Sequence record: KJ019142.1
DNA length: 64,000 nucleotides
Strand: one strand, 5' to 3'
Below the pieces are notes generated by a model. The model was not told the origin of the DNA, ran no database searches, and saw only the letters and a program-made list of their open reading frames with translations. Both the position numbers and the translations under genes were made by a program. Numbering within the stretch: position 1 is the stretch's first letter; every line of letters starts with the position of its first letter. Positions 27,211-52,975 of the stretch are shown here, one piece after another.

Positions 27211-27269
27211 TGTGACAGTCAACAAACTGGCACAGGGGGGTTGGCGAACCCCCTTTTTTGTGCTATAAT
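27211..27269 (+). promoter_or_regulatory. Cassette 1 (box + TTGGCG-17-TATAAT, hairpin/T-run over -35)
   Basis: TGTGACAGTCAACAAACTGGCACA. Confidence 0.85.
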
Positions 27270-27302
27270 AACAGGGTAGTCAAACAGAGAGGTTAGGTTC
27301 TA

Positions 27303-27653
27303 GTGGGTTTCCTGAAAGCTCTGTTTGCTACTGCCTTGGTGGGTATTGTTGGTGTGGTGTCTCCCGCCGAGGCAAGTGTAGGTGGCAATATGTCTCCAGT
27401 CGTAGAGGGTATGTGTATAAAGTACACACCCTTTGGTGATTTGCCCTGTAAGATTAGAGTATACGATAGTGAAGAACTAGTGTATATTACAGATGGTCAT
27501 AATACTATGACATATACCAAGCACCCATTCATACCATATGCGTGGACAATGTATGTGAATGAACAACGGATATCTAATATGTTATGCTCCCTAGATAAGT
27601 ATAACTTCTCTTGTTTCACCTCAATCCAATTTGTTCCTGATTATGAAAACTAA
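27303..27653 (+). CDS. Hypothetical exported protein (signal peptide)
   Basis: GFLKALFATALVGIVGVVSPAEA; first gene behind cassette promoter 1. Confidence 0.65.
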   Translation: MGFLKALFATALVGIVGVVSPAEASVGGNMSPVVEGMCIKYTPFGDLPCKIRVYDSEELVYITDGHNTMTYTKHPFIPYAWTMYVNEQRISNMLCSLDKYNFSCFTSIQFVPDYEN

Positions 27654-27972
27654 ATCATTGATGCTCACCAGTTTGATGGTGGCAACGATAACCGCAACAC
27701 CTGCTATGGCATACGGATATCGTCAACCATACTATCAACAACCCCCAGTTGTTATTCAACAACCAGCACCTGTTATCATTCAACAACCAAGACCAAGTAC
27801 CCTAGAAACTGTTCTAGGTATTGCAGTTATTGGTGCAGGTTTATACTGGAATAGTCCAGCATATCAGAACGATTATCAATACAATGGACATAGAAACCAT
27901 CATCACAACCAATACCAAGGTGGCAAAACATATGTAATTTGTAATGATTACGGACGGAGGTATTACTGCTGA
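27643..27972 (+). CDS. Hypothetical exported protein, Pro/Gln-rich
   Basis: MKTKSLMLTSLMVATITATPAMA signal, PPVVIQQPAPVIIQQP; start revised to ATG 27643. Confidence 0.65.
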   Translation: MKTKSLMLTSLMVATITATPAMAYGYRQPYYQQPPVVIQQPAPVIIQQPRPSTLETVLGIAVIGAGLYWNSPAYQNDYQYNGHRNHHHNQYQGGKTYVICNDYGRRYYC

Positions 27973-28181
27973 TGGATTTTGTGGCATTTATGATTGATAA
28001 GGAAAACGCCTTATCACTGATACAATCACTTCACGAATCTGCCGATAAGTGTAGTAAAGATGGAAGACGAATTATGGAAGCAAACTATACCAAACTAGCA
28101 GACATGATGATGGAACAATACCTAGTATCAGAGAGTATCCACAGGAAGAGAAAAAGAAATAACGGAGATTATATCGGCTAA
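27972..28181 (+). CDS. Hypothetical protein
   Basis: ORF coupled stop/start on both sides. Confidence 0.55.
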   Translation: MDFVAFMIDKENALSLIQSLHESADKCSKDGRRIMEANYTKLADMMMEQYLVSESIHRKRKRNNGDYIG

Positions 28182-28753
28182 TGATTGACTATCTTACCAT
28201 CCCTAATAGCTTATCAGACAAACTTTGTGACGACATCATTCACAAGTTTGACAGTGATGATAGAGTTGATTATGGTAAAATTAATATGGGAGATGTTGAT
28301 ACTGAGGTCAAAAGATGTAAAGAGTTGTTCATATCAATCCTAGATAACTGGCGAGATCTTGACAATCAGGTATTCAATGCGTCGGTGAAGGGGTTAAGTC
28401 AATACCGTGAGTACATTAATGAGTTATACGATGCCGATTATCTTCTAGGATCAGATAATTCTGATCAAGGTTACCGGGTAAAGAGATACGATATTGGTGA
28501 AGATTACTTTCATTGGCATCATGATCTACGCATAGATGAAAACCGTAGGATGAGATCAGTTGCCTTCATATGGTATCTAAATGATGTGGAAGAGGGTGGT
28601 GAAACAGAATTTAGTAATGGTCTAAAGATACGTCCAGAGAAAGGTAAACTACTTCTATTTCCATCTACATGGAACAACGTACACAGAGGGAATACACCAA
28701 TAAGTAATACGAAGTATGCTATTACTAGTTTCCTCTATTCCTCCTACGATTAG
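28181..28753 (+). CDS. 2OG-Fe(II) oxygenase
   Basis: FHWHHD, WYLNDVEEGGETEF, LLFPSTWNNVHRG. Confidence 0.9.
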   Translation: MIDYLTIPNSLSDKLCDDIIHKFDSDDRVDYGKINMGDVDTEVKRCKELFISILDNWRDLDNQVFNASVKGLSQYREYINELYDADYLLGSDNSDQGYRVKRYDIGEDYFHWHHDLRIDENRRMRSVAFIWYLNDVEEGGETEFSNGLKIRPEKGKLLLFPSTWNNVHRGNTPISNTKYAITSFLYSSYD

Positions 28754-28782
28754 GTGATATATACTAAGTATGGGATACTTCA

Positions 28783-29337
28783 GTGACAAAGGGTTATCGA
28801 ATCAGGGGAGACTTTATTGCAAGTCTCATTAAACAACACGACTGTAAGATTGGTTATGAAATTGGGGTATCCAATGGTGCAACTTTTGGTAAGATCTTAA
28901 AGAAATGTGATAATATTGAGTGGCATGGTGTAGATCCATGGGTTGTATGTTCCGAGTATGATAAACGCCCCAATGGTAAGGGTAAGTGGAATCATGATGC
29001 TAACTATGAGAAAGTTCAGGAGATTGTTAGTAAGTATCCAAATCGTGCATATACCCACCGCATGACCTCTGTAGAGGCTGCAAAGGAGGTAGAGGATAGA
29101 AGTATTGATATTATCTTTATAGACGGTCTGCACACCTACGAGGGGGTGAAGGAAGATCTAGAGGCTTGGGTGCCAAAGATCAAAATAGGTGGTATAATCT
29201 CTGGACATGACTATAAAGGTATGAAGAGACATGAGGGTGTGACTATACGAGTGAATGAAGTATTTGGTGAAGAAAACATTACTACTGGTCCAGATGTGAC
29301 CTGGTGGTTATACAAAACGGAGGAACACGATGACTGA
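28783..29337 (+). CDS. Class I SAM methyltransferase (Methyltransf_24-like)
   Basis: EIGVSNGAT, GVDPW, DIIFIDGLHTYEGVKEDL, GGIISGHDY. Confidence 0.88.
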   Translation: MTKGYRIRGDFIASLIKQHDCKIGYEIGVSNGATFGKILKKCDNIEWHGVDPWVVCSEYDKRPNGKGKWNHDANYEKVQEIVSKYPNRAYTHRMTSVEAAKEVEDRSIDIIFIDGLHTYEGVKEDLEAWVPKIKIGGIISGHDYKGMKRHEGVTIRVNEVFGEENITTGPDVTWWLYKTEEHDD

Positions 29338-30091
29338 GGGTTATGTTGTTATTGCACTTGGCGATAAGTATGTTCAACTCGCCAAGAACTTTGAAGATAC
29401 ACTAAGACAAAACGGTGACAATCGTCCTGTTCATGTTGTCACTGAAGACATGATTGATAAGGATAATGATAAGTATAGGGACTGTGATGTTCCCAACGAA
29501 AGGTATAACTGCTACCCCAAACTTCACTTCAATGAGTATGCGATATTTGATCATAGTATCCTAATCGATGCCGATGTTCTGTGCGTAGGTGATACCCAAC
29601 ACGTTTGGGATATGTGTAAAGAACAGGAACAGTTTATTCTTCACCGTGGGTGGGGACAAGTTACTAAATGGAATAGAGAACTACAGAAGAAAGTGTGGGA
29701 CGTTCATGGGTTCGTACCTCCTCGCATTCACGGAGCTTTCTGTTATCTAAGGAAGGCAGATATCAATGAAGACTTCTTTGAATTTATCCAAAATAATGTG
29801 TGGTTTCAGTATACTGAATGGTGTACGGAAGATGTCAAAGCAAGACATCACAGGTTAAGTAGATCAGACCAGGTGATATATGCTATTGGTTATGGTAAGT
29901 TTGATCTCATGCCCTGTCAGTTAATGGAAGTCCCTATTATGACTCATATATTGACAGCGGCACACGTTAATCCTCCATACGATAGAATCACTTTTAAGGA
30001 TCAAATTGGACCCGATTTACAACATCCAGTGGCATTTGCCCATATCGAACAACTATTTCAGGAGAGCACCCCAGAAAGTTTTCTAAGGTGA
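29330..30091 (+). CDS. GT-A glycosyltransferase-like protein (GT8-like)
   Basis: YPKLHF, ILIDADVL (DxD), DQVIY. Confidence 0.7.
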   Translation: MTEGYVVIALGDKYVQLAKNFEDTLRQNGDNRPVHVVTEDMIDKDNDKYRDCDVPNERYNCYPKLHFNEYAIFDHSILIDADVLCVGDTQHVWDMCKEQEQFILHRGWGQVTKWNRELQKKVWDVHGFVPPRIHGAFCYLRKADINEDFFEFIQNNVWFQYTEWCTEDVKARHHRLSRSDQVIYAIGYGKFDLMPCQLMEVPIMTHILTAAHVNPPYDRITFKDQIGPDLQHPVAFAHIEQLFQESTPESFLR

Positions 30092-30145
30092 CAGTCCACA
30101 AACTGGCACACAGGGCTTGGCAACCCTCCCAAAAGGTGCTATACT
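30087..30145 (+). promoter_or_regulatory. Cassette 2 (TTGGCA-17-TATACT)
   Basis: GGTGACAGTCCACAAACTGGCACA. Confidence 0.85.
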
Positions 30146-30171
30146 ATCCAAGTAACCAAAGGAAATGATTT

Positions 30172-30393
30172 ATGAAACCAGCAGAAATTCTCTACGAAAT
30201 GCAATCCATTCGTAAAGTCTGGCATAATAATAATTTCGTTATCAGTCCCGAACTAAACCGTCGCTATTGTGAACTTCTTAAACTCCGCCGTGAACGAGTT
30301 TCTCAATTCTATAAAGAGGGAAGGGTCGCTACAGGATCACAGACCCCCGACCTCAAAGCCCGAGAAGCCGCAAGACAAGCCGAGGTTGGTTGA
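30172..30393 (+). CDS. Hypothetical early protein
   Basis: First gene after cassette promoter 2. Confidence 0.65.
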   Translation: MKPAEILYEMQSIRKVWHNNNFVISPELNRRYCELLKLRRERVSQFYKEGRVATGSQTPDLKAREAARQAEVG

Positions 30394-30397
30394 GCCT

Positions 30398-30637
30398 ATG
30401 CAGGAACTTCTAGATACTTTCTATACAACTCCCTATGGTGATTTTGCCATTAGAAAGACTCGTTTCGGTGTTCATACCTCATATGATCGAGAGGGAACCG
30501 ATTTGGTGACAGGTTTAGAGTGGATTGACGTATTCACCACCACACCTTGTCACCTACAATGGGAGAAGGAGGGTTACAAACCCCCCGAAGGTACAGTTCA
30601 AGCAACCTATGATAGTGTAGTCTCTGGAAAACTCTAA
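30398..30637 (+). CDS. Hypothetical protein
   Basis: Start revised to ATG 30398; coupled to the next gene. Confidence 0.55.
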   Translation: MQELLDTFYTTPYGDFAIRKTRFGVHTSYDREGTDLVTGLEWIDVFTTTPCHLQWEKEGYKPPEGTVQATYDSVVSGKL

Positions 30638-30984
30638 TGGAAGACCGAAAATCACAACTATACAGCATCATGTATGATGCTATCAGTGAACTAACTGAGC
30701 ACGAGAGTGCTGAGGATATCTTTGACAATATTGTAGAGTATTTTGCTCTACGTGTTGAAGAAGCTCGTACTGAGGTTGATACTTATACGGATATGTTAAA
30801 CGTATTCCGTAAAGACAACCCAGTGAGAGACGTTCCTGGTGCAGATCCATACAAGAGAACTGAATGGGAACAGGCATTTGGTGATATGGATGATATCAAC
30901 CAAACATATATGCCATCAAACCAACATATTTGGAACGAGTTTCTTAAGAATATAAAATTCACGGACAATCAAGATACTAAATAA
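30637..30984 (+). CDS. Hypothetical protein
   Basis: Acidic 115-aa ORF, TAATG coupling. Confidence 0.6.
   Translation: MEDRKSQLYSIMYDAISELTEHESAEDIFDNIVEYFALRVEEARTEVDTYTDMLNVFRKDNPVRDVPGADPYKRTEWEQAFGDMDDINQTYMPSNQHIWNEFLKNIKFTDNQDTK
30978..30983 (+). promoter_or_regulatory. Late promoter (CP12-like gene)
   Basis: CTAAATA upstream of the AGGAG RBS. Confidence 0.55.
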
Positions 30985-31004
30985 ACACTATCAGGAGAAA
31001 AGAG

Positions 31005-31202
31005 ATGACTACTGACCCAAACGATAAGTACGCTAAGTTCAAAGTACCATTTGGCACTAATGAACATCACGAAGATGATGAATGGGATCCCACAACTGAG
31101 GGTAAAATCTCTGATTGGCACAACCGACATCAAGATAAACTCTTAGATGAGTTTTGTGACACTCACCCAGGCGCACCCCAGTGTAAGGTGTTTGACGATT
31201 AA
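31005..31202 (+). CDS. CP12-like protein (C-terminal CP12 motif)
   Basis: Ends EFCDTHPGAPQCKVFDD = C-x8-C-x2-F-D-D; AGGAG RBS and TAAATA upstream. Confidence 0.6.
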   Translation: MTTDPNDKYAKFKVPFGTNEHHEDDEWDPTTEGKISDWHNRHQDKLLDEFCDTHPGAPQCKVFDD

Positions 31203-31250
31203 CAAAGTGGCACAAGACCACTTGACAGTACCACATTATTAGGTTACAGT
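31191..31250 (+). promoter_or_regulatory. Cassette 3 (TTGACA-17-TACAGT, degenerate left arm)
   Basis: TTTGACGATTAACAAAGTGGCACA. Confidence 0.7.
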
Positions 31251-31272
31251 ACATTTGTTCAAGAGGTTTCTC

Positions 31273-31618: not shown

Positions 31619-31948
31619 TTGGTTGGGACTAAATATCCGTATAGTGAGAGAGGTGGAATAGTGGATTTTAGGGTCACAGTAAGAACCTACACCGGGGCAG
31701 TTAGAGTTGTCGAGGTGAGCAACATGCCGGACGAGGAGGCTGCCAGAGCGGAAGCTGTTGGTATGACTTTCGGTAAAGTTCTGCAGGTTGAGTGTTTAGA
31801 TGAGATCCCAGAACAATCCAAACCTAAAAAGAAAAGAGGACCAGTTCAAGAGATTGAACGAGAACTTAGACCAGGTGAAACAGAAACAATCGTAACAGGT
31901 TACAATAGCAACCCGTTGGCAGTGTTTTTCACTTTAGATGTTTTTTAG
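31619..31948 (+). CDS. Hypothetical protein
   Basis: FRVTVRTYTGAVRVVEV; start uncertain. Confidence 0.55.
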   Translation: MVGTKYPYSERGGIVDFRVTVRTYTGAVRVVEVSNMPDEEAARAEAVGMTFGKVLQVECLDEIPEQSKPKKKRGPVQEIERELRPGETETIVTGYNSNPLAVFFTLDVF

Positions 31949-31980
31949 GGGTTGACACACCCCTTTTTTTGTGCTATACT
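31947..31980 (+). promoter_or_regulatory. Box-less sigma70 promoter with terminator hairpin over -35
   Basis: AGGGG-TTGACACA-CCCCTTTTTTT, then TGC-TATACT at 17-bp spacing. Confidence 0.8.
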
Positions 31981-32268: not shown

Positions 32269-32515
32269 ACTATATACTACAGACAATTATTCAGGTACAA
32301 TGAACCTAACTGAACATCAAAAGATTCAACTCTCACAATTTATTCATGAGTCGTTCTCTACATTCTATGAGGAGGAACTAAAGTTTCAAGTAGAAACTCT
32401 AAAAGATGATGATAAGTTGGATTGGACTTATACAATCACACCAAGAGACTCAGGGGAGATTTATGATAAGGTTCAGGAATTATTCACACTGGAAAGGCGT
32501 GTGACAGTAGAATAA
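32258..32515 (+). CDS. Hypothetical protein
   Basis: Ends inside palindromic box 4. Confidence 0.55.
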   Translation: MMSKLYTTDNYSGTMNLTEHQKIQLSQFIHESFSTFYEEELKFQVETLKDDDKLDWTYTITPRDSGEIYDKVQELFTLERRVTVE

Positions 32516-32559
32516 GTGACACAAGGGGGGTTGGCAAACCCCCTTTTTGCTGCCATAAT
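32500..32559 (+). promoter_or_regulatory. Cassette 4 (TTGGCA-17-CATAAT, hairpin)
   Basis: TGTGACAGTAGAATAAGTGACACA. Confidence 0.85.
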
Positions 32560-32581: not shown

Positions 32582-32710
32582 ATGAACGTCCCCAACTGGC
32601 AGAAGCACTCCAAGAAAGACCAGAAGGGTCGCGGAGTGAGCAAGGGTCAGATGAGAGCCCGCAAACAGGCTCTACGTGCCCTAAAGGCAAAGCTCCTTGT
32701 GACAGTCTAG
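32582..32710 (+). CDS. Small basic early protein
   Basis: MNVPNWQKHSKKDQKGRG...; sole gene between boxes 4 and 5. Confidence 0.6.
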   Translation: MNVPNWQKHSKKDQKGRGVSKGQMRARKQALRALKAKLLVTV

Positions 32711-32757
32711 GAAGTGGCACAAGCCCCCTAGGCAAGACCCTCAAACCCTGCTATACT
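32698..32757 (+). promoter_or_regulatory. Cassette 5 (TAGGCA-17-TATACT)
   Basis: TGTGACAGTCTAGGAAGTGGCACA. Confidence 0.85.
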
Positions 32758-35681: not shown

Positions 35682-35877
35682 AGAAGATCTAATGATCAAC
35701 TGGAAACAGAAGATGATGAAACATTGCACCCACGATTGGGAAAAGCAACTATTACGTGAAGGTGCCACATCATCTGTGACAGCAATGGGTATAATGTCAC
35801 TAAAGAAACGATACAAAAAGATTATGGGTATTGATGATGATCCAAAGCCACCTGTAGTTCAGTATGCTTCATATTGA
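35671..35877 (+). CDS. Hypothetical protein
   Basis: Stop lies in box 6. Confidence 0.55.
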   Translation: MMTEEDLMINWKQKMMKHCTHDWEKQLLREGATSSVTAMGIMSLKKRYKKIMGIDDDPKPPVVQYASY

Positions 35878-35931
35878 CACCTGAATAACTGGCACAAGGG
35901 GGGTAGGCACCCCCCTTTTTTGTGCCATAAT
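35873..35931 (+). promoter_or_regulatory. Cassette 6 (TAGGCA-16-CATAAT, hairpin)
   Basis: ATTGACACCTGAATAACTGGCACA. Confidence 0.8.
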
Positions 35932-35957: not shown

Positions 35958-36335
35958 ATGCAACTACCTACCCCCCTGCTAAACAGAGGTTACACTATAA
36001 ACGGCAATACTGCCAGTAGGGTATATCAGCACGGTTTTAGAGTAGAGTTAGAGGCACTAACTACCCTAAACATGCCCATAGGTTTACTAAACTATATTAT
36101 AAACGAAAACGATATAGAGTGCCCCTGGGCACCAGCAGATGTAGAGCAGTTTGATACTATCTGGCACTATACTGTTACAGATATTAGAGGTGAGATACTA
36201 GATAATACATATGGTTTTACAACCTATTATATGTTTGACTCTATTAGAGAGATACATAACGCACTAACAGATATTACAGTAGATAATGCGTTAGATATTA
36301 TGAATGGCACATCTGAACTATATGCCACCTGCTAA
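35958..36335 (+). CDS. Hypothetical early protein
   Basis: Sole gene between boxes 6 and 7. Confidence 0.65.
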   Translation: MQLPTPLLNRGYTINGNTASRVYQHGFRVELEALTTLNMPIGLLNYIINENDIECPWAPADVEQFDTIWHYTVTDIRGEILDNTYGFTTYYMFDSIREIHNALTDITVDNALDIMNGTSELYATC

Positions 36336-36380
36336 ACTGGCACAGGGGGGCTAGGCACAGCCCCCTACACCTGCTATACT
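36321..36380 (+). promoter_or_regulatory. Cassette 7 (TAGGCA-17-TATACT)
   Basis: TATGCCACCTGCTAAACTGGCACA. Confidence 0.8.
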
Positions 36381-37138: not shown

Positions 37139-37197
37139 TGTGACAGATGGGGAAGTGGCACACGCTTCCCCGCAAACCCCCTGAAACCTGTTATCTT
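37139..37197 (+). promoter_or_regulatory. Cassette 8 (CCCGCA-17-TATCTT)
   Basis: TGTGACAGATGGGGAAGTGGCACA. Confidence 0.8.
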
Positions 37198-38305: not shown

Positions 38306-38365
38306 TGTGCCAGTTGGACTAGTGGCACAACCCCCCTAGGCAAGACCCCCCCTATCGTGTATTGT
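38306..38365 (+). promoter_or_regulatory. Cassette 9 (TAGGCA-17-TATTGT)
   Basis: TGTGCCAGTTGGACTAGTGGCACA. Confidence 0.85.
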
Positions 38366-38623: not shown

Positions 38624-38869
38624 ATGAACACAACAACAATCAACATTCTCAAATCACTGGACATTCTTTCCACTTTGATTCAAGCATTCTATGAGATTGG
38701 ATATGAACTTGGCACCTTCTATCGCAACCATCTCCATTCACATGTGAAGTTTGCTATTGAATACTCTGGTCTCGTTATTCGTGAGACCTATAGTAACCGC
38801 CAAGAGTATTTCACAAAACTGAATAACCTTCGCAACCAAGCTGGTTCATACTTTGTCTATAGCGTGTGA
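38624..38869 (+). CDS. Hypothetical protein
   Basis: Stop TGA supplied by box 10. Confidence 0.6.
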   Translation: MNTTTINILKSLDILSTLIQAFYEIGYELGTFYRNHLHSHVKFAIEYSGLVIRETYSNRQEYFTKLNNLRNQAGSYFVYSV

Positions 38870-38924
38870 CAGTTGAGGAAGTGGCACAAGCCCCCTAGGC
38901 AAACCCCTCCTCACCTGCTATACT
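38865..38924 (+). promoter_or_regulatory. Cassette 10 (TAGGCA-17-TATACT)
   Basis: TGTGACAGTTGAGGAAGTGGCACA. Confidence 0.85.
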
Positions 38925-38949: not shown

Positions 38950-39192
38950 ATGACTCACCTTTCTTTCACTCAAACCACACAAAACGCACTCCGTGAGTTG
39001 GATCGTTTAGAGGGAATAAAAGTTAGACTCGCTGGTCTGATTGTTGATCTTAAAGAGACACCATCAGCTAACTCTGAGACTTGGGTCAGGATGTATACTG
39101 ACCGCCTCGTTTCTAATGTTATCCCAGCCATCAAGGAAGTTAAAGAATATCTCACTAGTCAGGATGCACTAGTTACCAAAGCATCCAACTGA
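38950..39192 (+). CDS. Hypothetical early protein
   Basis: Sole gene between boxes 10 and 11. Confidence 0.65.
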   Translation: MTHLSFTQTTQNALRELDRLEGIKVRLAGLIVDLKETPSANSETWVRMYTDRLVSNVIPAIKEVKEYLTSQDALVTKASN

Positions 39193-39240
39193 CAAACTGG
39201 CACAAGGGGGGTTGGCAAGACCCCTCAAAACCCCTATACT
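39181..39240 (+). promoter_or_regulatory. Cassette 11 (TTGGCA-17-TATACT, degenerate left arm)
   Basis: GCATCCAACTGACAAACTGGCACA. Confidence 0.8.
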
Positions 39241-39523: not shown

Positions 39524-39582
39524 TGTGACAGTTGGGGAAGTGGCACACGCTTCCCCACAAACCACTCCATACCTGCTATACT
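39524..39582 (+). promoter_or_regulatory. Cassette 12 (CCCACA-17-TATACT)
   Basis: TGTGACAGTTGGGGAAGTGGCACA. Confidence 0.85.
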
Positions 39583-39964: not shown

Positions 39965-40474
39965 ATGACTGATACCAACAAGGCTCAAACAATTGAAGAG
40001 CTGAAAGCTGAAGTTTCTGAACTGAAGGCAGCTAGGAAGGAAGAACTTCTGGCACAGGCAGAACAACGAAAGCAAGATGAGGAACTTCGTTCACTCGAAC
40101 TTCAGAAACAAGCTCTAGAAAGTGGTTCCCTCCCCTCCCCCACAGGCACACCTCAGTCACTACAACGTAGGATGACTGATATTGAAAACGCACGAGTTCG
40201 CACCTGGGCATATGCACTAGGAGCCTATTTCACTGGTCCTATCATGCCAGCTGTGGTGGCTAATCGTACTAAGAATTGGACACCTTTCTGGGCTGGATTG
40301 GGTCTTGGCATTGTATCTCTCCCCCTAGCATTTGCTGACCTTGGTATCATCTCCTCTGTCCCTGCAGCTGCTTTAGGAACTGTACTTCAGGCTCAGAAAT
40401 CTAACAAGAAGCGTGAGGAGTTGGGTATTGTTTCCCCTGAGGAAGCTGACCTTCTCCGTTTCAAACAGTTCTGA
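39965..40474 (+). CDS. Coiled-coil plus membrane-hairpin hypothetical protein
   Basis: Charged helical N-half, hydrophobic C-half. Confidence 0.65.
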   Translation: MTDTNKAQTIEELKAEVSELKAARKEELLAQAEQRKQDEELRSLELQKQALESGSLPSPTGTPQSLQRRMTDIENARVRTWAYALGAYFTGPIMPAVVANRTKNWTPFWAGLGLGIVSLPLAFADLGIISSVPAAALGTVLQAQKSNKKREELGIVSPEEADLLRFKQF

Positions 40475-41108: not shown

Positions 41109-41356
41109 ACAACCCTTTCGCCTCACTAACTACCGAAGAGTTTATCTCTCTATCTGATGCATGTGCTCTCTCTGAACAAATGTGGAGGGAGCGCTCCCGT
41201 TCTATAAAAGCAGGGGAGCCACGTTGGTTTTTAGATGGCGAACCTATGTTCACTGAGGAGGAATGTCGTTCAGAGATGAAACGATATCGTGAGTTACAGA
41301 AACGAGTTTCCTGGTTCACTCTCACACCAGAGGAGGGGGAGGGTGTGCCAGTCTAA
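41105..41356 (+). CDS. Hypothetical protein
   Basis: ATGA overlap; ends in box 13. Confidence 0.55.
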   Translation: MNNPFASLTTEEFISLSDACALSEQMWRERSRSIKAGEPRWFLDGEPMFTEEECRSEMKRYRELQKRVSWFTLTPEEGEGVPV

Positions 41357-41403
41357 GAAGTGGCACAACCCCCCTAGACAAACCCCTCTTTTTCTGCTAT
41401 ACT
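41344..41403 (+). promoter_or_regulatory. Cassette 13 (TAGACA-17-TATACT)
   Basis: TGTGCCAGTCTAAGAAGTGGCACA. Confidence 0.85.
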
Positions 41404-42331: not shown

Positions 42332-42525
42332 TGGTTGACTTCGATACTCTAACCCACGAAGAACTAGAGAGACTATCTGATGACTGTGAAGACTTTCTTC
42401 TTCATAGAAATATACCTCTAAGGTCACATTCCTATGAGAATATCATCAGACATGCTATTTTGGAAGGATACCAACTATCTCGGTATCCTGGTGTGACACC
42501 TGGGAAACTGGCACAAGACCCCTAG
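42331..42525 (+). CDS. Hypothetical protein
   Basis: Runs through box 14. Confidence 0.55.
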   Translation: MVDFDTLTHEELERLSDDCEDFLLHRNIPLRSHSYENIIRHAILEGYQLSRYPGVTPGKLAQDP

Positions 42526-42551
42526 ACAAACCAGACCACACCTGCTATACT
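42492..42551 (+). promoter_or_regulatory. Cassette 14 (TAGACA-17-TATACT)
   Basis: TGTGACACCTGGGAAACTGGCACA. Confidence 0.85.
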
Positions 42552-44491: not shown

Positions 44492-44701
44492 ATGTCTTCA
44501 CCATCAGCATTCACACCAGCATTAGGTCTAGAAGTTGAATACAGGGGCTTTGTGGGTTATATCAAGTTTATAGATGAAGAATATTTAACAGTGTGTGTGA
44601 AGAAGAAAGAGCACCAAATGTTTGGTGATGTTTGTATGGTTGTGTATCCAAGTCAGTGGGAACACATTAAACTAATGGGCGGACCTCACAGAGACCGCTA
44701 G
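44492..44701 (+). CDS. Hypothetical protein
   Basis: VEYRGFVGYIKFIDEEYLTVCV; stop in box 15. Confidence 0.6.
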   Translation: MSSPSAFTPALGLEVEYRGFVGYIKFIDEEYLTVCVKKKEHQMFGDVCMVVYPSQWEHIKLMGGPHRDR

Positions 44702-44758
44702 GACAGTTGGAGAAGTGTCACAAGGGGGGTTCGCAACCCTCCTTTTTTATGCTATACT
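44699..44758 (+). promoter_or_regulatory. Cassette 15 (TTCGCA-17-TATACT, hairpin)
   Basis: TAGGACAGTTGGAGAAGTGTCACA. Confidence 0.85.
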
Positions 44759-44785: not shown

Positions 44786-44932
44786 ATGACTATCAACTTC
44801 AAAAGTCTATTCATCACCACTTGTGTGGGTCTCACCCTAATACTAGGGAGCTTCGCTTTTACCAGTGATTATGGTACTGAGACCGGGCGTGGCGAACAGA
44901 CTGAGAGCCCTTACTACGGACCCGCTTTCTAA
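44786..44932 (+). CDS. Small signal-anchored protein (absent from track)
   Basis: MTINFKSLFITTCVGLTLILGSFAF...; sole gene between boxes 15 and 16. Confidence 0.6.
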   Translation: MTINFKSLFITTCVGLTLILGSFAFTSDYGTETGRGEQTESPYYGPAF

Positions 44933-44977
44933 AGTGGCACAAGGGGGGTTGGCAAGACCCTCTACACCTGCTATACT
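44918..44977 (+). promoter_or_regulatory. Cassette 16 (TTGGCA-17-TATACT, right half-site only)
   Basis: ...CTAAAGTGGCACA-AGGGGGG-TTGGCA. Confidence 0.8.
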
Positions 44978-45000: not shown

Positions 45001-45177
45001 ATGTTCAAACTTCAACTTAAGTGGCAGAAAGAAGGTGAGTGGATTGATACAGTATACGCTCCTACAGAATACGCAACAGCTTTCTTTCGTTGGAGACAGT
45101 ACCAAGAGCTTTGGGGTGATACTCACACCTATCGCCTCCTCGATGTGACACCTCAGGAAGTGGCACAAGCCTCCTAG
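45001..45177 (+). CDS. Small early protein (absent from track)
   Basis: MFKLQLKWQKEGEWIDTVY...; AAGGA RBS; sole gene between boxes 16 and 17. Confidence 0.6.
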   Translation: MFKLQLKWQKEGEWIDTVYAPTEYATAFFRWRQYQELWGDTHTYRLLDVTPQEVAQAS

Positions 45178-45203
45178 GCAAACCACCCCACACCTGCTAT
45201 ACT
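45144..45203 (+). promoter_or_regulatory. Cassette 17 (TAGGCA-17-TATACT)
   Basis: TGTGACACCTCAGGAAGTGGCACA. Confidence 0.85.
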
Positions 45204-45541: not shown

Positions 45542-45697
45542 ATGTTTGTATCCTTCACTGAAATCCAAGACTACATTCGCGAAGATCAATACACATATAG
45601 TGAGCGCCAGTTCCGCTCACGCAAGTATAAAAAGAACGAACGTCGTTACCAACGTCGCCAGAAACAACAACAAAGAGACCGCACCTACGACGTGTGA
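45542..45697 (+). CDS. Small basic protein (absent from track)
   Basis: MFVSFTEIQDYIRED...RKYKKNERRYQRRQKQ; TGA supplied by box 18. Confidence 0.55.
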   Translation: MFVSFTEIQDYIREDQYTYSERQFRSRKYKKNERRYQRRQKQQQRDRTYDV

Positions 45698-45751
45698 CAG
45701 TTGGAGAAGTGGCACACGCTTCTCCGCAAACCCCTAAGGGGGTGCTATACT
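45693..45751 (+). promoter_or_regulatory. Cassette 18 (TCCGCA-17-TATACT)
   Basis: TGTGACAGTTGGAGAAGTGGCACA. Confidence 0.85.
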
Positions 45752-45776: not shown

Positions 45777-46001
45777 ATGACCACCACCACTCCAAACCTC
45801 TACAACGAAGCTATCCGTCGTTTGGCTGACGGGTTCTCCTCAGAGTTCGCTGAGTTCTGTGCAGGAGACGAGAGGGTTCACGAGATCATGATGGAACTCG
45901 CTAGTGAGTTCGTAGAAACTAATATCCCTGTAGTGAGTGAGGACAGCCAGACTGACGTGGCATCTGAGCTCCTCATGAGTATCACAGTCACCAAGGTGTG
46001 A
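45777..46001 (+). CDS. Small acidic early protein
   Basis: Sole gene between boxes 18 and 19; TGA supplied by box 19. Confidence 0.65.
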   Translation: MTTTTPNLYNEAIRRLADGFSSEFAEFCAGDERVHEIMMELASEFVETNIPVVSEDSQTDVASELLMSITVTKV

Positions 46002-46056
46002 CAGTCTAGGAACTGGCACAAGGGGGGTTGGCAACACCCCCCAAACCCCTTATAAT
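45997..46056 (+). promoter_or_regulatory. Cassette 19 (TTGGCA-17-TATAAT)
   Basis: TGTGACAGTCTAGGAACTGGCACA. Confidence 0.85.
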
Positions 46057-47539: not shown

Positions 47540-47544
47540 GGATC

Positions 47545-47856
47545 ATGAAACGCTACGGACTTTATTGGCTGAGAGCTATCACCCTGGGAGCTGGTTTGAA
47601 CTTTGTTTTGACTGGTTACCTTATGGGTCACCAAAAGTGGAAGTTTCAACATGCAGCTCCACTCTCAGCGTTTATCTGTGTGAATCTATCGTATGTGGCG
47701 GATCGTCTTATCTTTGGTGATAAGAAGGAACCTGAAGATTTAGATCCAGATACTATTGTTATATCAACCCCACACTGTTGCCCCGTATGTTCAGAGTATC
47801 CTTGCACTTGTGACAGTTGGGAAAGTGGCACAACCCCCCTAGGCAACACCCTCTGA
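47545..47856 (+). CDS. Hypothetical membrane protein
   Basis: Two hydrophobic helices, CCPVC...PCTC; runs through box 20. Confidence 0.5.
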   Translation: MKRYGLYWLRAITLGAGLNFVLTGYLMGHQKWKFQHAAPLSAFICVNLSYVADRLIFGDKKEPEDLDPDTIVISTPHCCPVCSEYPCTCDSWESGTTPLGNTL

Positions 47857-47868
47857 ACCTGCTATACT
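47809..47868 (+). promoter_or_regulatory. Cassette 20 (TAGGCA-17-TATACT)
   Basis: TGTGACAGTTGGGAAAGTGGCACA. Confidence 0.85.
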
Positions 47869-48119: not shown

Positions 48120-48404
48120 ATGACACGCACTCCAATCACAGTTACCCTCAAGCGTAGCGAATGGGAATGTTATACAGACACTCCTGATACTATCATCGAA
48201 ACCATCAACACATACTTCTCTTATGTGTTATCAACTAAAGATAACGCATTTGATGCACAAGCTGAGATATTTAAGTTTCTGAATATGTTTAGTGAGTTTG
48301 GGTTTATGGATAGTGAGTGCCTAGAATGTGCAACTAGAGTTATCAATCGTTACTTTGATTCATATCTTTCCCGCTGGAGTCAGGTGGGTGATGTGACAGT
48401 CTAG
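48120..48404 (+). CDS. Hypothetical protein
   Basis: Start revised to ATG 48120; ends in box 21. Confidence 0.6.
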   Translation: MTRTPITVTLKRSEWECYTDTPDTIIETINTYFSYVLSTKDNAFDAQAEIFKFLNMFSEFGFMDSECLECATRVINRYFDSYLSRWSQVGDVTV

Positions 48405-48450
48405 GAACTGGCACACGCTTCTCCGCAAACCCCTCAGGGGGTGCTATACT
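48392..48450 (+). promoter_or_regulatory. Cassette 21 (TCCGCA-17-TATACT)
   Basis: TGTGACAGTCTAGGAACTGGCACA. Confidence 0.85.
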
Positions 48451-48472: not shown

Positions 48473-48790
48473 ATGAATTTCAGAACACTAGCACTCACCA
48501 CCACCCTGGCTCTCTCCACTGTCCTAGGTGGTTTGGCTCCTGAAGCTAAGTCAGCTGACTTTTGTGACAACATCCCCGGCAACTCGGGATACGTTTGTGT
48601 TACCATGGGTCTCTGGTTCGACTTGGTTGAGGCAGACATACCCGCCTTTGGTGGTAAAGAGTCATTACACATCACCTGTGACGGTGGCTGGTCCTACCGT
48701 TCGAATGGCAACTGGAACAAAGACGCCGCTTCCCTTGTGGCTAAGGAGTACTGTGAAGGTGCTGGCTGGAACAGCCACTCCGAGGTGTGA
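48473..48790 (+). CDS. Exported 4-Cys protein (paralog of 45227)
   Basis: Signal MNFRTLALTTTLALSTVLGGLAPEAKS; TGA supplied by box 22. Confidence 0.7.
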   Translation: MNFRTLALTTTLALSTVLGGLAPEAKSADFCDNIPGNSGYVCVTMGLWFDLVEADIPAFGGKESLHITCDGGWSYRSNGNWNKDAASLVAKEYCEGAGWNSHSEV

Positions 48791-48844
48791 CAGTTGAGGA
48801 AGTGGCACACGCTTCCCCCAAAACCCCTCAGGGGGTGCTATACT
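48786..48844 (+). promoter_or_regulatory. Cassette 22 (weak -35, TATACT)
   Basis: TGTGACAGTTGAGGAAGTGGCACA. Confidence 0.8.
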
Positions 48845-49136: not shown

Positions 49137-49171
49137 TATTATCTAACACAAACCACTCACAACAAACTATC

Positions 49172-49345
49172 ATGAACCGACTAGAACTACTGACCCAACG
49201 TGAACAACTGATGGAGAGGATTGACTCTATCTGTGATGAATTCTTTTATAAGAACTATAATGGAGATACGTCAGAAGCAGATGAATTAGTTCGTATTCTA
49301 TGTGATGCTGTTTGTGAAACCATAGACCCAGCGGGTATGGTGTGA
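49172..49345 (+). CDS. Small hypothetical protein (absent from track)
   Basis: MNRLELLTQREQLMERID...ILCDAVCETID; TGA supplied by box 23. Confidence 0.6.
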   Translation: MNRLELLTQREQLMERIDSICDEFFYKNYNGDTSEADELVRILCDAVCETIDPAGMV

Positions 49346-49399
49346 CAGTTGGACTAGTGGCACACGCTTCTCCGCAAACCCCTCCTCACCTGCTATACT
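49341..49399 (+). promoter_or_regulatory. Cassette 23 (TCCGCA-17-TATACT)
   Basis: TGTGACAGTTGGACTAGTGGCACA. Confidence 0.85.
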
Positions 49400-49424
49400 A
49401 TATTCATACCAAAGGAAACCGACC

Positions 49425-49688
49425 ATGTTCCAAGTCTGTATTGAAGATTCACTAGATCACCGTCATACAGTTGATGAGTTTGAGACTCTGGAAGAAGCAC
49501 AAGAGTGTTATAACGAGTGTTTGAAGATTGGTCCTGAGGGTTATGAACTCTCTGTTGAGTTAGAGCAAGTTATTGGCGACCATGATGATTATATTTCAAT
49601 TGATTTCACCGAGTGGTTTACACAAGAGGAGTGGGATGTGGCTCATCCATGGAATGAGAAGGAAGGAGTATGGGAAAACATAGACTGA
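49425..49688 (+). CDS. Very acidic early protein
   Basis: Sole gene between boxes 23 and 24; Glu/Asp-rich. Confidence 0.65.
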   Translation: MFQVCIEDSLDHRHTVDEFETLEEAQECYNECLKIGPEGYELSVELEQVIGDHDDYISIDFTEWFTQEEWDVAHPWNEKEGVWENID

Positions 49689-49747
49689 TGTGACAGTTGG
49701 AGAAGTGGCACACGCTTCTCCGCAAGACCCGCCTCACCTGCTATACT
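49689..49747 (+). promoter_or_regulatory. Cassette 24 (TCCGCA-17-TATACT)
   Basis: TGTGACAGTTGGAGAAGTGGCACA. Confidence 0.85.
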
Positions 49748-49774
49748 ATTCACATACCAAACAAAGGAAACCAA

Positions 49775-50116
49775 ATGACCACCACCCAAACCAAAACCGA
49801 GTTCCTCACCGAGGCAATGATCGAACAGGTGAACAACCTCTGGAAGGTTTATAACGTGGAGTCAGGTCACACCATCACCCCACTCCTTAAGTATGAAGTG
49901 GCTAAGAAGTATATCAAGGTCTATCGTCTTGATGTTGTCAATGGTGAGATTCGTGACGGTCGTTCTGTGTTTATGTTTATCGATAAGGAGACTGGAGCAG
50001 TTCTGAAACCAGCCAGTTGGAGAGCACCCGCTAAGGGTATCCGGTTCTACATTGAGTCGTTGGCAGAGAACCCTGAGCTGGTTGATCAATACGGTTCATT
50101 CCTCTACCGTCGCTGA
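49775..50116 (+). CDS. Conserved phage hypothetical protein (KPASWxAPAK family)
   Basis: KKYIKV...FMFIDKETGAVLKPASWRAPAKGIRF; start revised. Confidence 0.7.
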   Translation: MTTTQTKTEFLTEAMIEQVNNLWKVYNVESGHTITPLLKYEVAKKYIKVYRLDVVNGEIRDGRSVFMFIDKETGAVLKPASWRAPAKGIRFYIESLAENPELVDQYGSFLYRR

Positions 50117-50176
50117 TGTGACAGCCACCAAGGTGGCACAGGGGGGCTAGGCAGCTCCCCTTCTTTATGCTATACT
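50117..50176 (+). promoter_or_regulatory. Cassette 25 (TAGGCA-17-TATACT, hairpin) upstream of the helicase
   Basis: TGTGACAGCCACCAAGGTGGCACA. Confidence 0.85.
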
Positions 50177-50198
50177 ATATTCATACCAAAGGAACCCG

Positions 50199-51452
50199 AT
50201 GACCCTGACTCTCCGCCCCCACCAACTAGAAGCACTTCAGGTGATGGCTGAGACCCGTCTTGGCCAGATATTAGTTCCAACCGGTGGTGGTAAGACCCTT
50301 ATCGCTATCATGGACGTTGTGAGGACTCTAGAGAACGCAGGAACCCCTCAGACTATCGTTGTGGTAGCTCCCCGTATCCTTCTAGCTCAGCAACTCTGTA
50401 GTGAGTATATGGAGGTTTTGAGCGATAGGTTCGCCAACGTTATCCCCGCCCATATTCACTCAGGTCATACACCTCACTTTTCTACCACTAACATTCAGAA
50501 GATCCATCTTTTCGAGAAGATGATGGATACCGCCAACCTCCACCGCATATATTTCACCACATACAACTCACTTCCACGTTTAGCAGAAGCAGGTGTAAGT
50601 GTAGATACTATTATGTTTGATGAGGCTCATAACTCCACTCGTAATGACTTCTATCCCGCTACTAAGTATTTCTCACAGACCGCTAGTCGTTGTTACTACT
50701 TTACAGCAACTCCCCGTCACTCAGTAACATCCAAGAGACACGGAATGAACGAGTCTGATGTATACGGACAGGTTATCTACAATGTTCCTGCCCCTACACT
50801 TGTACAGGGTGGGTTTATCATCCCCCCACAGGTTCTTGTTAAAGAGATGGAGTTCGTAGCTAAACACGAGCTCATCTCACAACGTGATACAAACCACCTC
50901 ATCTCTTGTATTGATGACAACAACACGAGCAAAGTTCTAGTTTGTGCTAAGTCTGTCAAACAGATCATGCGTATGTTTAGTGAGACCGATATCAGCCAAC
51001 AACTTGATGATCGTGGTTTCTCCTATATGTACATCTCAGCTAAGACTGGTGGTGTTATCAATGGTAAGAAAGTATCACGTACTATGTTCTTCGATACTCT
51101 AAACGAGTGGGGCAAGGATAACAACAAGAAGTTCATTGTTCTTCATCATTCTATTCTCTCTGAAGGTATCAACGTGAGTGGTTTGGAGTCAGCTATCTTC
51201 TTACGTACCATGGATCATATTACTATCTCCCAAACGATTGGACGTGTTATTCGCTTACATAAAGATGATGCTCAAGGTATGAGAGAGGGTACGATTCGCC
51301 CCGGTGATCTTAACTCCTACACTAAGTCGTTTGGTTTGTGTATTGTTCCAGTTTATTCTAAGACACAACAAACCGTTGCTAAGTCTCTTCAAGCAGTTGT
51401 CAATACCGTCTTTGTTGAAGGTGAAGCAGCAACCACAGTTGTGAGGCGTTAG
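50199..51452 (+). CDS. Superfamily 2 DEAH helicase (ResIII/UvsW-like)
   Basis: LRPHQ, PTGGGKT, FDEAHN, FTATP, LSEGIN, QTIGRVIR. Confidence 0.9.
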   Translation: MTLTLRPHQLEALQVMAETRLGQILVPTGGGKTLIAIMDVVRTLENAGTPQTIVVVAPRILLAQQLCSEYMEVLSDRFANVIPAHIHSGHTPHFSTTNIQKIHLFEKMMDTANLHRIYFTTYNSLPRLAEAGVSVDTIMFDEAHNSTRNDFYPATKYFSQTASRCYYFTATPRHSVTSKRHGMNESDVYGQVIYNVPAPTLVQGGFIIPPQVLVKEMEFVAKHELISQRDTNHLISCIDDNNTSKVLVCAKSVKQIMRMFSETDISQQLDDRGFSYMYISAKTGGVINGKKVSRTMFFDTLNEWGKDNNKKFIVLHHSILSEGINVSGLESAIFLRTMDHITISQTIGRVIRLHKDDAQGMREGTIRPGDLNSYTKSFGLCIVPVYSKTQQTVAKSLQAVVNTVFVEGEAATTVVRR

Positions 51453-51453
51453 T

Positions 51454-51582
51454 ATGAATTATCAAAACCAAGCTCTTGTGATACTTCTAGGTCTAATGTT
51501 CATAGCTGGTATTAACGTACTTCACTACGAACAACAATGGCAATGTAGGATGCATCAAACCTATTGTTTTGTTTCTGAATAA
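51454..51582 (+). CDS. Possible small membrane protein
   Basis: MNYQNQALVILLGLMFIAGINV; overlaps the endonuclease 3' end. Confidence 0.35.
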   Translation: MNYQNQALVILLGLMFIAGINVLHYEQQWQCRMHQTYCFVSE

Positions 51583-52271
51583 TACCATAGGTAACCCTTC
51601 CAACGCGAACCCCATTTGATTGAAGTACAAATACCCTTCCCACGATCCTCCTCGTTAAAGGATCTCATCGCAGCACTAATAGAGTCAAACACGGGTGTAA
51701 CATGACCGCTCTTATGAACTCCATAGACTTGTTTCTTATTCTTAGCGTGTTTATGAATCCACCATTTGTGACCATATGCAGTGCCTTCTCGATCTATACT
51801 ACGACGGATACTTGATGGTATTCCGTTTACATATTCAGCGGCAGCAACCCAACCATGAAAGGTCTTTATCTTACCCGTTTCAAGGTTACGACATTTGATC
51901 ACGTTCTTATCATGTTTCTTAGGTTTCTTCTTCCGTTGATAACCCCAACGCCTATCCCCTTTATGATATGACTCTTTATTATTCAGCTTCTTAGTCTTAT
52001 GCTCCATCACTAAAACGTTGTACTCAGGGTTATACTTATTCATCCAATATTCCACTCGTTCAGTAACCTTATTCTCATTCACTTCTTCTAGTATGCGTAT
52101 AGTGAAGTCATCGGAGTTATAGTAACCCAACGCATTCGACAAGGGAGTATTTTCCTCCTTATGATTTCTAAGGATATTAGACCAAACTTTATTCAGGGGA
52201 AGCGTATCATAACCAATGTATTTGTGAGAGGTTTGTCTATTCAAGATGATGTAGATGTTTGTGATACTCAC
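51561..52271 (-). mobile_element. Free-standing GIY-YIG homing endonuclease with two NUMOD1/IENR1-like repeats
   Basis: NIYIILNRQTSHKYIG, conserved E in ERVEYWM, two ...F.(G/S)..AA...I...I...G...G..W repeats; only sizeable minus-strand gene in 27-54 kb. Confidence 0.75.
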
Positions 52272-52607
52272 GCCAGATACTCTCTATTCTGATTGTATAT
52301 ATAAACATTATCTTTTTTTATCACATATCGTTCATCATCTCCCTATTGAATGTTATAATAGAAAGGAAGAGATAAACGTATATAACCAACGTAATCACCT
52401 AAGGAAAGGTTATCTAATAGAAGGAACTAATCAATACATTAACCAACGTAATCATATAGGGGAAGGTGAATAGAAAGCCCTATAGAAAGAACCCCTTATT
52501 CAATACAATCCCCAAGGTAATAACCAATAAGATAGTATCATATAACGAGGTCTTTAGGTTGCTCTAAGTCTCACTGGAAACCTACCTGCCCGTTGCAACC
52601 TAAGCCC

Positions 52608-52636
52608 GTTATAACACGGGACTTCGGAAAAGTCAA
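52608..52636 (-). promoter_or_regulatory. Minus-strand sigma70 promoter facing the GIY-YIG gene
   Basis: Reverse complement reads TTGACT-17-TATAAC with TGn extension. Confidence 0.7.
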
Positions 52637-52682
52637 GGGATCTCCGAAAAACTTAATATTTCTCCCCTCCCCCCTGGACTCC

Positions 52683-52741
52683 TGTGCCAATTCCCAAACT
52701 GGCACACGGAAACCCCAAAACCCCTCCCAGTACCCTATACT
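52683..52741 (+). promoter_or_regulatory. Cassette 26 (weak -35, TATACT)
   Basis: TGTGCCAATTCCCAAACTGGCACA. Confidence 0.8.
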
Positions 52742-52769
52742 ATATTCATACAAACAAAGGGAACACCCC

Positions 52770-52928
52770 ATGACCAAAGCAACTCAGAGACCTTCCACCC
52801 AGAGCCGTTACACCAGTCAGGTAGCCCGGGACCGTAAGGCAGCAGCACTCCAGAGGGCTGAGGAGCGTCGCCTCACTGGCTCATGTGGAGAGGATCAGGT
52901 GAACCGCCTCTACACTGTGACACTCTGA
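52770..52928 (+). CDS. Small basic early protein
   Basis: Sole gene between boxes 26 and 27; start revised. Confidence 0.55.
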   Translation: MTKATQRPSTQSRYTSQVARDRKAAALQRAEERRLTGSCGEDQVNRLYTVTL

Positions 52929-52975
52929 TAACTGGCACACACCCCCTTGACCCCACCCCCTCTATACCCTATAAT
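52916..52975 (+). promoter_or_regulatory. Cassette 27 (TTGACC-17-TATAAT)
   Basis: TGTGACACTCTGATAACTGGCACA. Confidence 0.85.

Follow-up and report, generated by a model that had tools for sequence, protein, structure and literature searches.

The DNA analysed here, a window of 64,000 nucleotides (positions 1-64000 of sequence record KJ019142.1), belongs to Synechococcus phage ACG-2014f isolate Syn7803C11, a T4-like cyanomyovirus (Kyanoviridae, Atlauavirus) with a genome of 222,619 bp. We found that it carries an array of 27 co-oriented promoter cassettes, each containing a 24-bp inverted repeat (hereafter the box) at a fixed distance from a sigma-70-type -10 element, and that, by sequence, this box is identical in class to the element upstream of the Yfr2 small RNA (sRNA) genes of non-marine cyanobacteria. 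We consider it probable, though well short of certain, that the cassettes are early promoters read by host RNA polymerase, that the box is the site of a dimeric host activator and that the cassettes double as recombination modules. Much of the mortality of marine Synechococcus and Prochlorococcus is due to T4-like cyanophages. These phages lack the middle-promoter machinery of T4, and the way in which they activate their early genes is still not understood.

In the window there are 15 exact matches to TGTGMCAG-N8-STGGCACA, on the + strand only, against an expectation of 0 from 100 shuffles; the right half, STGGCACA, is found 30 times against 4.1 expected. (Two of these half-sites, at 24580-24626, fall in a repeated GGTGG/CACCC-rich coding repeat inside the short-tail-fibre gene; they are chance half-sites, not cassettes.) When the whole ACG-2014f genome was scanned with a relaxed box rule, counting units of box plus -10, we recovered 27 units, each on the + strand, whose boxes begin between 27211 and 52916 (array span 27211-52975), exactly the number of co-oriented copies that the original prediction, made from the letters of the window, had given. 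Outside the array, the remaining 196 kb yielded only three boxes in the same scan: one before CobS (112761-112784), one before the small open reading frame (ORF) gene_208 (153137-153160) and one before psbA (167768-167791, with a leader of ~150 nt). Thus, 27 of the 30 genomic boxes lie within 12% of the genome, in the interval from tail-fibre to baseplate genes. Flanked by those genes, the array region comprises 75 mostly hypothetical small genes, all but one ORF on the + strand, and is syntenic with the helicase region of phage Syn9. Annotation beyond small hypothetical ORF is limited to a dCMP deaminase, a DUF6267 gene, a helicase and a minus-strand homing-endonuclease-like ORF. Thirteen of the 27 cassettes head a single gene and 19 head three or fewer, in line with the prediction that many cassettes drive only one to three genes.

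A cassette reads, in order, box, 29-30 nt, a mostly TGn-extended TATACT or TATAAT -10, a common leader, a Shine-Dalgarno sequence and ATG. The upstream stop codon coincides with the start of the box or lies no more than a few nt from it, and the -10 hexamer begins 29 or 30 nt past the box, which places the end of the -10 at the predicted 35-36 nt. The -10 is near consensus in 24 of 27 cassettes and is preceded by TGn in 21 (by inspection), and the ATG lies 57-68 nt past the box in 24. Also as predicted, the right half-site is nearly invariant (TGGCACA in 25 of 27). Decay of the left half is real too, but the five copies first counted are too few; we find ~6-7 (box starts 30087, 31191, 35873, 36321, 39181, 44699 and 44918). 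All three of the -35 classes described earlier are present (TTGGCA/TTGACA; TAGGCA/TAGACA; TCCGCA/CCCGCA/CCCCAA), and in most of these predicted promoters 2-5 of 6 positions agree with TTGACA.

The two clearest box-less promoters of the window, in contrast, have a perfect TTGACA. Both are terminator/promoter cassettes on the + strand: one (31947-31980; promoter at 31972) carries its TTGACA in a hairpin loop, with a T-run and a TGn TATACT -10; the other (55540-55583; promoter at 55575) likewise has TTGACA in a hairpin loop, followed by TGn TATAAT, and adjoins an indel junction. Box promoters, on the other hand, mostly have TAGGCA or TCCGCA. A consensus -35 where the box is missing and a poor one where it is present fits a role of the box in compensating for the poor -35.

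An inverted repeat beginning so close to the upstream stop codon could also work through its own fold, forming an RNA hairpin or a DNA cruciform by which the upstream transcript is terminated, processed or stabilised. Whole cassettes are indeed more structured than shuffles: the 62 nt from the box into the -10 fold with a mean z of -2.1, and the predicted fold reaches -13 kcal/mol or lower in ~18 of 27 cassettes. The box itself, however, folds only in three perfect palindromes, and the lowest-energy hairpin usually lies elsewhere, at a variable position: around the -35 (G6/C6 stems), between -35 and -10, or between the box spacer and post-box sequence. About five of these hairpins resemble terminators: they carry the -35 in the loop and have a T-run. 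No U-run follows the box. Most ACG-2014f copies have an A.G mismatch at position 5 of the stem, and position 17, a G in 67% of copies across phages, faces G at position 8, a G-G clash that breaks the pair. Rfam gave no match in the window at gathering thresholds, and the structural explanation leaves the rigid 29-30 nt between box and -10 unaccounted for; we judge it highly improbable. Complementarity between spacer and post-box sequence (GGGGAAG/CTTCCCC, GGAGAAG/CTTCTCC) was considered as covariation and rejected, being present in only four of the seven cassettes of its class, in cassettes that are recombinant mosaics. We treat this pairing as one among several ways of providing a hairpin.

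What is conserved beyond this genome is the box, the -10 and the distance between them. A BLAST search of phage records with a whole cassette matched ACG-2014f isolates only; the whole cassette is therefore species-specific. In contrast, an exact-pattern scan of IMG/VR found at least 120 loci, ~30 of the matches listed having at least three boxes, and the multi-box contigs that we checked are diverse Kyanoviridae related to S-SRM01, S-T4, S-SSM7 and Sf-FS3. Among 249 box instances in the IMG/VR matches listed, 69 have a good -10 beginning at offset 29 and 33 have one at offset 30, other offsets being almost empty. We built a conservation profile from 162 unique promoters on 87 unrelated cyanomyovirus contigs among the same listed matches. 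Spacer positions that the search had left free turned out to be conserved (T9 1.18 bits, T10 0.63, A15 0.78, A16 1.12), extending the palindrome to TGTGCCAGTT-N4-AASTGGCACA. The -35 region, on the other hand, reaches at most 0.4 bits, and sequence before the box or between box and -10 shows almost no conservation. The -10 flank and the leader are lineage-specific; box, -10 and spacing alone are common between lineages. Cassettes homogenised within a genome, of which only box, -10 and spacing are kept between genomes, point to a functional cis element tied to the polymerase.

Individual genomes agree with this profile. In Syn9 the box precedes gp55, 63, 68, 73, 75, 78, 79 and 90/91, and every promoter in the small-gene region around the helicase has one. 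Some of these boxes have variant proximal halves (e.g. TGTCCAC, TGTCTAC), and a scan requiring at least 11 of 14 matches found only ~6 boxes in Syn9, more being recovered by reading the upstream regions. A left half-box also lies ahead of Syn9 CobS, and a degenerate box (11 of 14 positions) ahead of a peptidase gene. The Prochlorococcus phage P-SSM3 (35% GC) retains the GC-rich half at eight promoters, and S-RIM8 has four box promoters. Gene and promoter also move together as a module: the DUF6267 gene is box-driven both in ACG-2014f (at 41.4 kb) and in Syn9 (gp183, at 148.7 kb).

The original prediction cautioned that the motif might already be known from Syn9 work, and this is very likely right. 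A transcriptome study of Syn9 and P-TIM40 (ISME J 2016) reportedly describes a novel regulatory element that controls early-gene transcription, such elements being abundant and conserved among T4-like cyanophages. The box is the sole element besides the -10 common to the Syn9 small-gene promoters, and is therefore very probably the element of that study. Like the box, the published element reportedly sits before small genes of T4-like cyanophages, in its case early ones. The ACG-2014f array is thus of a largely known kind, unusually dense and near consensus: its copies outnumber those that we found in Syn9 about threefold and depart less from the consensus.

To look for the box in cellular genomes, TGTGMCAGT-N6-ASTGGCACA was scanned against 185,579 bacterial and archaeal genomes. 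The scan gave 74 loci, about the chance number, of which ~16 were labelled cyanobacterial. This apparent cyanobacterial enrichment is inflated by orthologous pairs from Nostoc and Xenococcaceae that lie inside the coding sequence of mobile-element genes. Two matches bore the name Synechococcus; one has no promoter context, and the other, 'MAG: Synechococcus sp. CUG2217' (a 193,981-bp contig, L134), was discarded as a misbinned cyanophage, with BLAST matches to ACG-2014h and S-CAM4. The robust cases of host use are the Yfr2 promoters: five Nodularia-type genomes and Cyanothece have the box immediately before the Rfam Cyano-1 RNA (RF01701). When metagenomes were scanned for the box with the Yfr2 5' motif after it, a third cyanobacterial lineage with the same layout came to light, besides some phage promoters and an unrelated soil palindrome. 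On the RNA strand, this layout consists of the upstream stop codon, the box, 30 nt, TATTAT or TATTCT, ~6 nt and the RNA, with a box-to--10 distance of 30-31 nt across the five Nodularia-type genomes, Cyanothece and the metagenome cyanobacterium; in Nodularia locus L145 the upstream gene is purH. Among Nodularia species the half-sites are kept and the spacer varies. The RNA begins GUGUGUGAGGAG and contains a GGAAACA loop; a 5' GUGUGAGGAG motif together with this loop is the hallmark of the Yfr2 sRNA family (PMC1242208, PMC2662882), whose Synechocystis member Yfr2a has a promoter equal in strength to that of psbA2 (PMC2662882).

From this comparison, the phages appear to use a strong-promoter element of cyanobacteria. 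With host Yfr2 promoters carrying the box at the phasing seen in the phages, a host protein is its most economical binder. The literature searched contains no description of a link between the box and Yfr2. Tandem Yfr2 (Cyano-1) pairs were seen in Nodularia (L198, 2757-2986; L166, 4104-4334), in which the box precedes only one copy, the region upstream of the other being AT-rich and unrelated, paralleling Prochlorococcus, where only some yfr2 copies carry the regulator site. The box also occurs in a further setting: a scaffold of a Trichormus sp. metagenome-assembled genome (L160, 4620-4710) has a perfect box, 29 nt, TATAGT, a phage-like leader, ATG and a 101-aa ORF, next to an HK97-gp10-like tail gene in a prophage-like Nostocales region. 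As for the soil palindrome, it occurs on soil-type metagenome contigs L208-L211, L213, L214, L217, L219, L220 and L222-L224 (GC 0.51-0.58) as TGTGACAG-N8-CTGTCACA nested in GGGGCAGGTT..AACCTGCCCC, upstream of a conserved gene start; its half-sites are the same and the organism is unrelated.

The binder might instead be encoded by the phage, as an early activator delivered with the virion or as a protein that later shuts off early promoters, the likeness to Yfr2 promoters then being mimicry or coincidence. The box is far commoner in phage genomes than in any host sequence that we saw, and the genome and metagenome scans found no exact copy in genuine marine picocyanobacterial DNA. T4 offers a precedent in injected proteins that favour early promoters (PMC5780444). 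ACG-2014f, moreover, encodes a sigma-70-family protein of its own (230 aa, 135545-136237, with Pfam regions 2 and 4), in addition to the T4-type late sigma factor gp55; we saw no link between this protein and the box. Against a phage binder, the box stands at the same phasing before Yfr2 genes of three cyanobacterial lineages, where no phage is involved, and the apparently unrelated Trichormus prophage-like element has it as well. A Pfam search of eight phage proteins (the other ~65 small ORFs were not screened) revealed no DNA-binding domain or candidate. Overall, we regard a phage-encoded binder as rather unlikely.

If the binder is a host protein, the leading candidate is PlmA. The Prochlorococcus MED4 protein PMM1637 is an ortholog of this GntR-family regulator, which is present in all cyanobacteria and exclusive to them; it was pulled down on the MED4 yfr2 promoter, gel-shifts the yfr2 and yfr4 promoters and raises reporter activity, acting through a palindrome called CGRE1 (PMC6191309). 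CGRE1 is described as a 21-22 nt element, GTTG/GTTA-N13/14-CAAC/TAAC around a central GTG(N1-2)CAC, whose start lies at -55 to -57, and it reportedly occurs in marine picocyanobacteria alone (PMC6191309). The PlmA regulon has been described as unknown (PMC7344720), and the Synechocystis ortholog has no known target (PMC5923263). CGRE1, the site of a dimeric activator, resembles the box in being a ~22-bp palindrome before the -10 of Yfr2-family promoters, with nested GTK..MAC pairs; in the low-light-type CGRE1, the central heptamer is the same as the box half GTG(G/T)CAC. It is activation of yfr2 promoters by PMM1637 through this related palindrome that puts PlmA first, although we hold its binding to the box only tentatively.

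Several observations weigh against a host activator at early promoters. The term 'early' is itself drawn from synteny with Syn9 and from what the Syn9 transcriptome study reportedly found. The box is centred at about -54.5, which is no classical class I or class II activator position, and the extended -10 alone could explain why a poor -35 is tolerated. Among the 185,579 genomes, genuine sequence of marine picocyanobacteria, the actual hosts, contained no exact box, and the metagenome scan turned up no marine-type Yfr2 gene with one. A CGRE1 pattern rebuilt from the text of the paper found no such site in the ACG-2014f genome, in Syn9 or in the 120 listed IMG/VR loci. By the same text, the order of the elements is swapped, GTTG being outside and GTGNCAC central in CGRE1, whereas TGTG is outside and GTT..AAC inside in the box. 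CGRE1 would also occupy -56 to -35, while the box starts at about -66 of the predicted start site, approximately one helical turn further upstream.

The original prediction had proposed that the box binds a dimeric activator or a recombination protein. Three features fit the former: the palindrome is extended, it keeps a rigid distance to the -10, and the -35 is weak. In the host-activator model, the array would be an early-gene promoter set, perhaps a host-takeover regulon, in which each intergenic cassette is a self-contained module with its box at about -66 to -43. Transcription would be by host RNA polymerase carrying the primary sigma factor and would start ~7 nt past the -10, and a dimeric protein of the uninfected cell would bind the box and recruit or stabilise polymerase at promoters with a poor -35. 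The hairpins would probably limit transcription running in from upstream cassettes or shield the 3' ends of upstream mRNAs. Homologous recombination would use the ~90 bp of homology between cassettes to add, remove or exchange modules of a gene and its promoter. More speculatively, the box may be the ancestral operator of a cyanobacteria-wide regulator, most plausibly PlmA, which would drive the very strong, light- and nitrogen-responsive Yfr2 promoters and whose site T4-like cyanophages and at least one Nostocales prophage would have copied onto their early genes. Were this tentative idea true, the first minutes of infection would be wired to host light and nitrogen-status signalling, by modules that double as recombination substrates.

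Evidence for recombination comes from sister isolates. More than 40 ACG-2014f isolates are 95-99% identical; we compared the region from four of them (US37, US42, C19 and C24) using chained BLAST alignments. At 27-53 kb we found 16 distinct indel or replacement events, nine of which have at least one junction in a cassette. Cassettes make up 10% of the region and an event is expected to touch one by chance in 19% of cases (P ~0.001). In C19, 2.4 kb (genes 61-67) are absent and a hybrid of cassettes 10 and 13 (numbered here along the array) remains, the crossover lying in the spacer between -35 and -10. US42 and C24 have additional genes with a cassette on either side, with junctions in the leader, while in US37 and C24 gene_51 is swapped for 3.6-3.9 kb between the cassettes at 35873 and 36321. 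Recombination between cassettes reshuffles gene-plus-promoter modules in the wild cyanophage population, in the manner of the promoter/stem-loop (PeSL) cassettes of other T4-like phages; no description of this in wild cyanophages was found in the literature searched.

Gains, losses and swaps bounded by cassettes would also be expected if cassettes were moved by a site-specific recombinase or a homing-type nuclease acting on the box, much as on integron attC, and homing-endonuclease-like ORFs do occur nearby. One is the array's sole minus-strand ORF (51561-52271, 'cox1-i7 protein'), which has a weak NUMOD1 match as in homing endonucleases and varies in length among isolates; another is an HNH endonuclease ORF inserted in C19 at 38132/38198, outside the cassettes. 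The crossovers, however, are scattered over the cassette, mostly downstream of the box (the -35/-10 spacer in C19, the leader in US42 and C24), and this favours homologous recombination over cutting at the box; the recombination-protein half of the earlier proposal was therefore not borne out. A fixed box-to--10 distance and the single-copy promoter of a host sRNA have no place in such a model either, and we consider it very improbable. Rigid spacing, the clash at positions 8 and 17 and scattered crossovers together disfavour both the structural and the recombinase explanations. Apart from the cassettes, gene_65 (39965-40474; annotated 'two-component sensor histidine kinase', no Pfam match) is cleanly missing from C24, with junctions outside cassettes.

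Along the array, all on the + strand, cassette 1 (27211-27269), before gene_23, has an exact box, a terminator-like GGGGGG-TTGGCG-CCCCC hairpin with a T-run and the -35 in its loop, and a TGn TATAAT -10. The left half of cassette 2 (30087-30145) has a 1-nt change, followed by TTGGCA and TGn TATACT. Cassette 3 (31191-31250) is the weakest, with a decayed left half, TTGACA and a TACAGT -10, and cassette 4 (32500-32559) has TGACACA as its right half, a G6/C5 hairpin with a T-run and a CATAAT -10. An exact box, TAGGCA and TGn TATACT characterise cassette 5 (32698-32757), which stands first of a 12-gene run. The left halves of cassettes 6 (35873-35931) and 7 (36321-36380), the left and right junctions of the US37/C24 replacement, are both decayed; the former has a terminator-like hairpin around TAGGCA and a CATAAT -10, the latter a G6..C5 hairpin and TGn TATACT. 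Cassette 8 (37139-37197) has an exact box, a spacer GGGGAAG that pairs with post-box CTTCCCC, and a TATCTT -10. The perfect palindrome TGTGCCAG..GTGGCACA of cassette 9 (38306-38365) is followed by TAGGCA and TATTGT, with an insertion junction at the 3' end of the cassette in US37 and US42.

Cassette 10 (38865-38924), with an exact box, is the left partner in the C19 deletion crossover, and cassette 13 (41344-41403), with a palindromic box and TAGACA ahead of the DUF6267 gene, is the right partner. Between them, cassette 11 (39181-39240) has lost its left half and kept the right one intact, with TTGGCA within a G6/C4 hairpin, and cassette 12 (39524-39582) has an exact box, a spacer/post-box hairpin and the site of the gene-plus-cassette insertion in US42. 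The left half is TGTGACAC both in cassette 14 (42492-42551; TAGACA, TGn TATACT, first of a nine-gene run) and in cassette 17 (45144-45203; TAGGCA). Cassette 15 (44699-44758) is 1-2 nt off in both halves, has a terminator-like hairpin around TTCGCA and is the place of a ~0.7-kb module insertion in C24; cassette 16 (44918-44977) has lost its left half, its right half being intact and its -35 TTGGCA. Exact boxes are found in cassette 18 (45693-45751), with TCCGCA and two hairpins (spacer/post-box, and CCCCT..GGGGG between -35 and -10), in cassette 19 (45997-46056), with TTGGCA within a G6/C6 hairpin and TATAAT, and in cassette 20 (47809-47868), with TAGGCA and TGn TATACT.

The boxes of the next five cassettes are exact as well. 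Cassette 21 (48392-48450; TCCGCA) is the left junction, and cassette 22 (48786-48844) the right junction, of a single-gene replacement in three isolates. Cassettes 23 (49341-49399) and 24 (49689-49747) both have TCCGCA, the latter being a module insertion site in three isolates, and cassette 25 (50117-50176) has a hairpin around TAGGCA and stands ahead of the helicase gene, the ortholog of Syn9 gp75. The last two cassettes each have an indel junction inside: cassette 26 (52683-52741) reads TGTGCCAA..CTGGCACA and has no recognisable -35, and cassette 27 (52916-52975) reads TGTGACAC..CTGGCACA, with TTGACC and TATAAT. Elsewhere in the genome, at 119370-122386, the gp43 DNA polymerase is annotated as two ORFs with two small hypothetical ORFs between them.

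Identity of the box with the Yfr2 element is a testable lead to the missing factor of cyanophage early transcription. Should the box indeed be a site for a host factor that also serves Yfr2 promoters, a concrete candidate would be at hand in PlmA or some other dimeric regulator, and infection success may be mechanistically linked to host light or nitrogen status. If the site is of PlmA type, the cassettes would be the first sizeable set of binding sites for a regulator whose regulon has been described as unknown. The promoter cassettes are also seams along which small genes are gained and lost in wild cyanophage populations, and the pattern of box plus -10 can be used to annotate early genes in cyanomyovirus genomes and metagenomes.

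Other promoter classes were compared with the cassettes. CRP/NtcA sites (TGTGA-N6-TCACA or GTA-N8-TAC, centred at -41.5/-61.5) were rejected: the half-sites of the box, TGTGMCA and TGKCACA, are 10 nt apart and centred at about -54.5, and even the variant TGTGACA...TGTCACA is TGTGA-N14-TCACA. A sigma-54 promoter (TGGCAC-N5-TTGC, with 12 nt from GG to GC) was also rejected, the distance from the GG of TGGCACA to the GC of TTGGCA being 16 nt and a sigma-70-type -10 following 17 nt later. Cyanobacteria are not known to have sigma-54. Yfr2/RF01701 promoters share with the phage cassettes the same class of box, TGTGCCAGTT..AACTGTCACA, the 30-31 nt to the -10 and the position just after an upstream stop codon; unlike the array, they have one copy per locus, drive a non-coding RNA and have TGTCACA rather than TGGCACA as the proximal half.

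The closest relatives in organisation are the PeSL cassettes that mediate shuffling in RB49/phi1 and other T4-like phages, including PST/T4 and nt-1/KVP40, and that comprise a sigma-70-like promoter, a polyG/polyC stem-loop of variable position, a Shine-Dalgarno sequence and ATG, in ORFan-rich hyperplastic regions (PMC2839356, PMC4122927). Excised mini-circles with a single ORF and a chimeric cassette are a further mark of PeSL systems. Neither of the two papers deals with cyanophages (PMC2839356, PMC4122927). The upstream region of coliphage PeSLs is AT-rich, whereas ACG-2014f has a GC-containing 24-bp palindrome there, and its -35 elements are mostly poor, unlike those of the coliphage cassettes. 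Otherwise the likeness that the original prediction had noted is borne out: the ACG-2014f cassettes have the sigma-70-like -10, the G/C stem-loop, the Shine-Dalgarno sequence and the ATG of PeSLs, and lie in a hyperplastic small-ORF region. In both systems, ~100 bp intergenic repeats with a variable G/C stem-loop flank small ORFans, and recombination between copies explains indels and replacements among close relatives.

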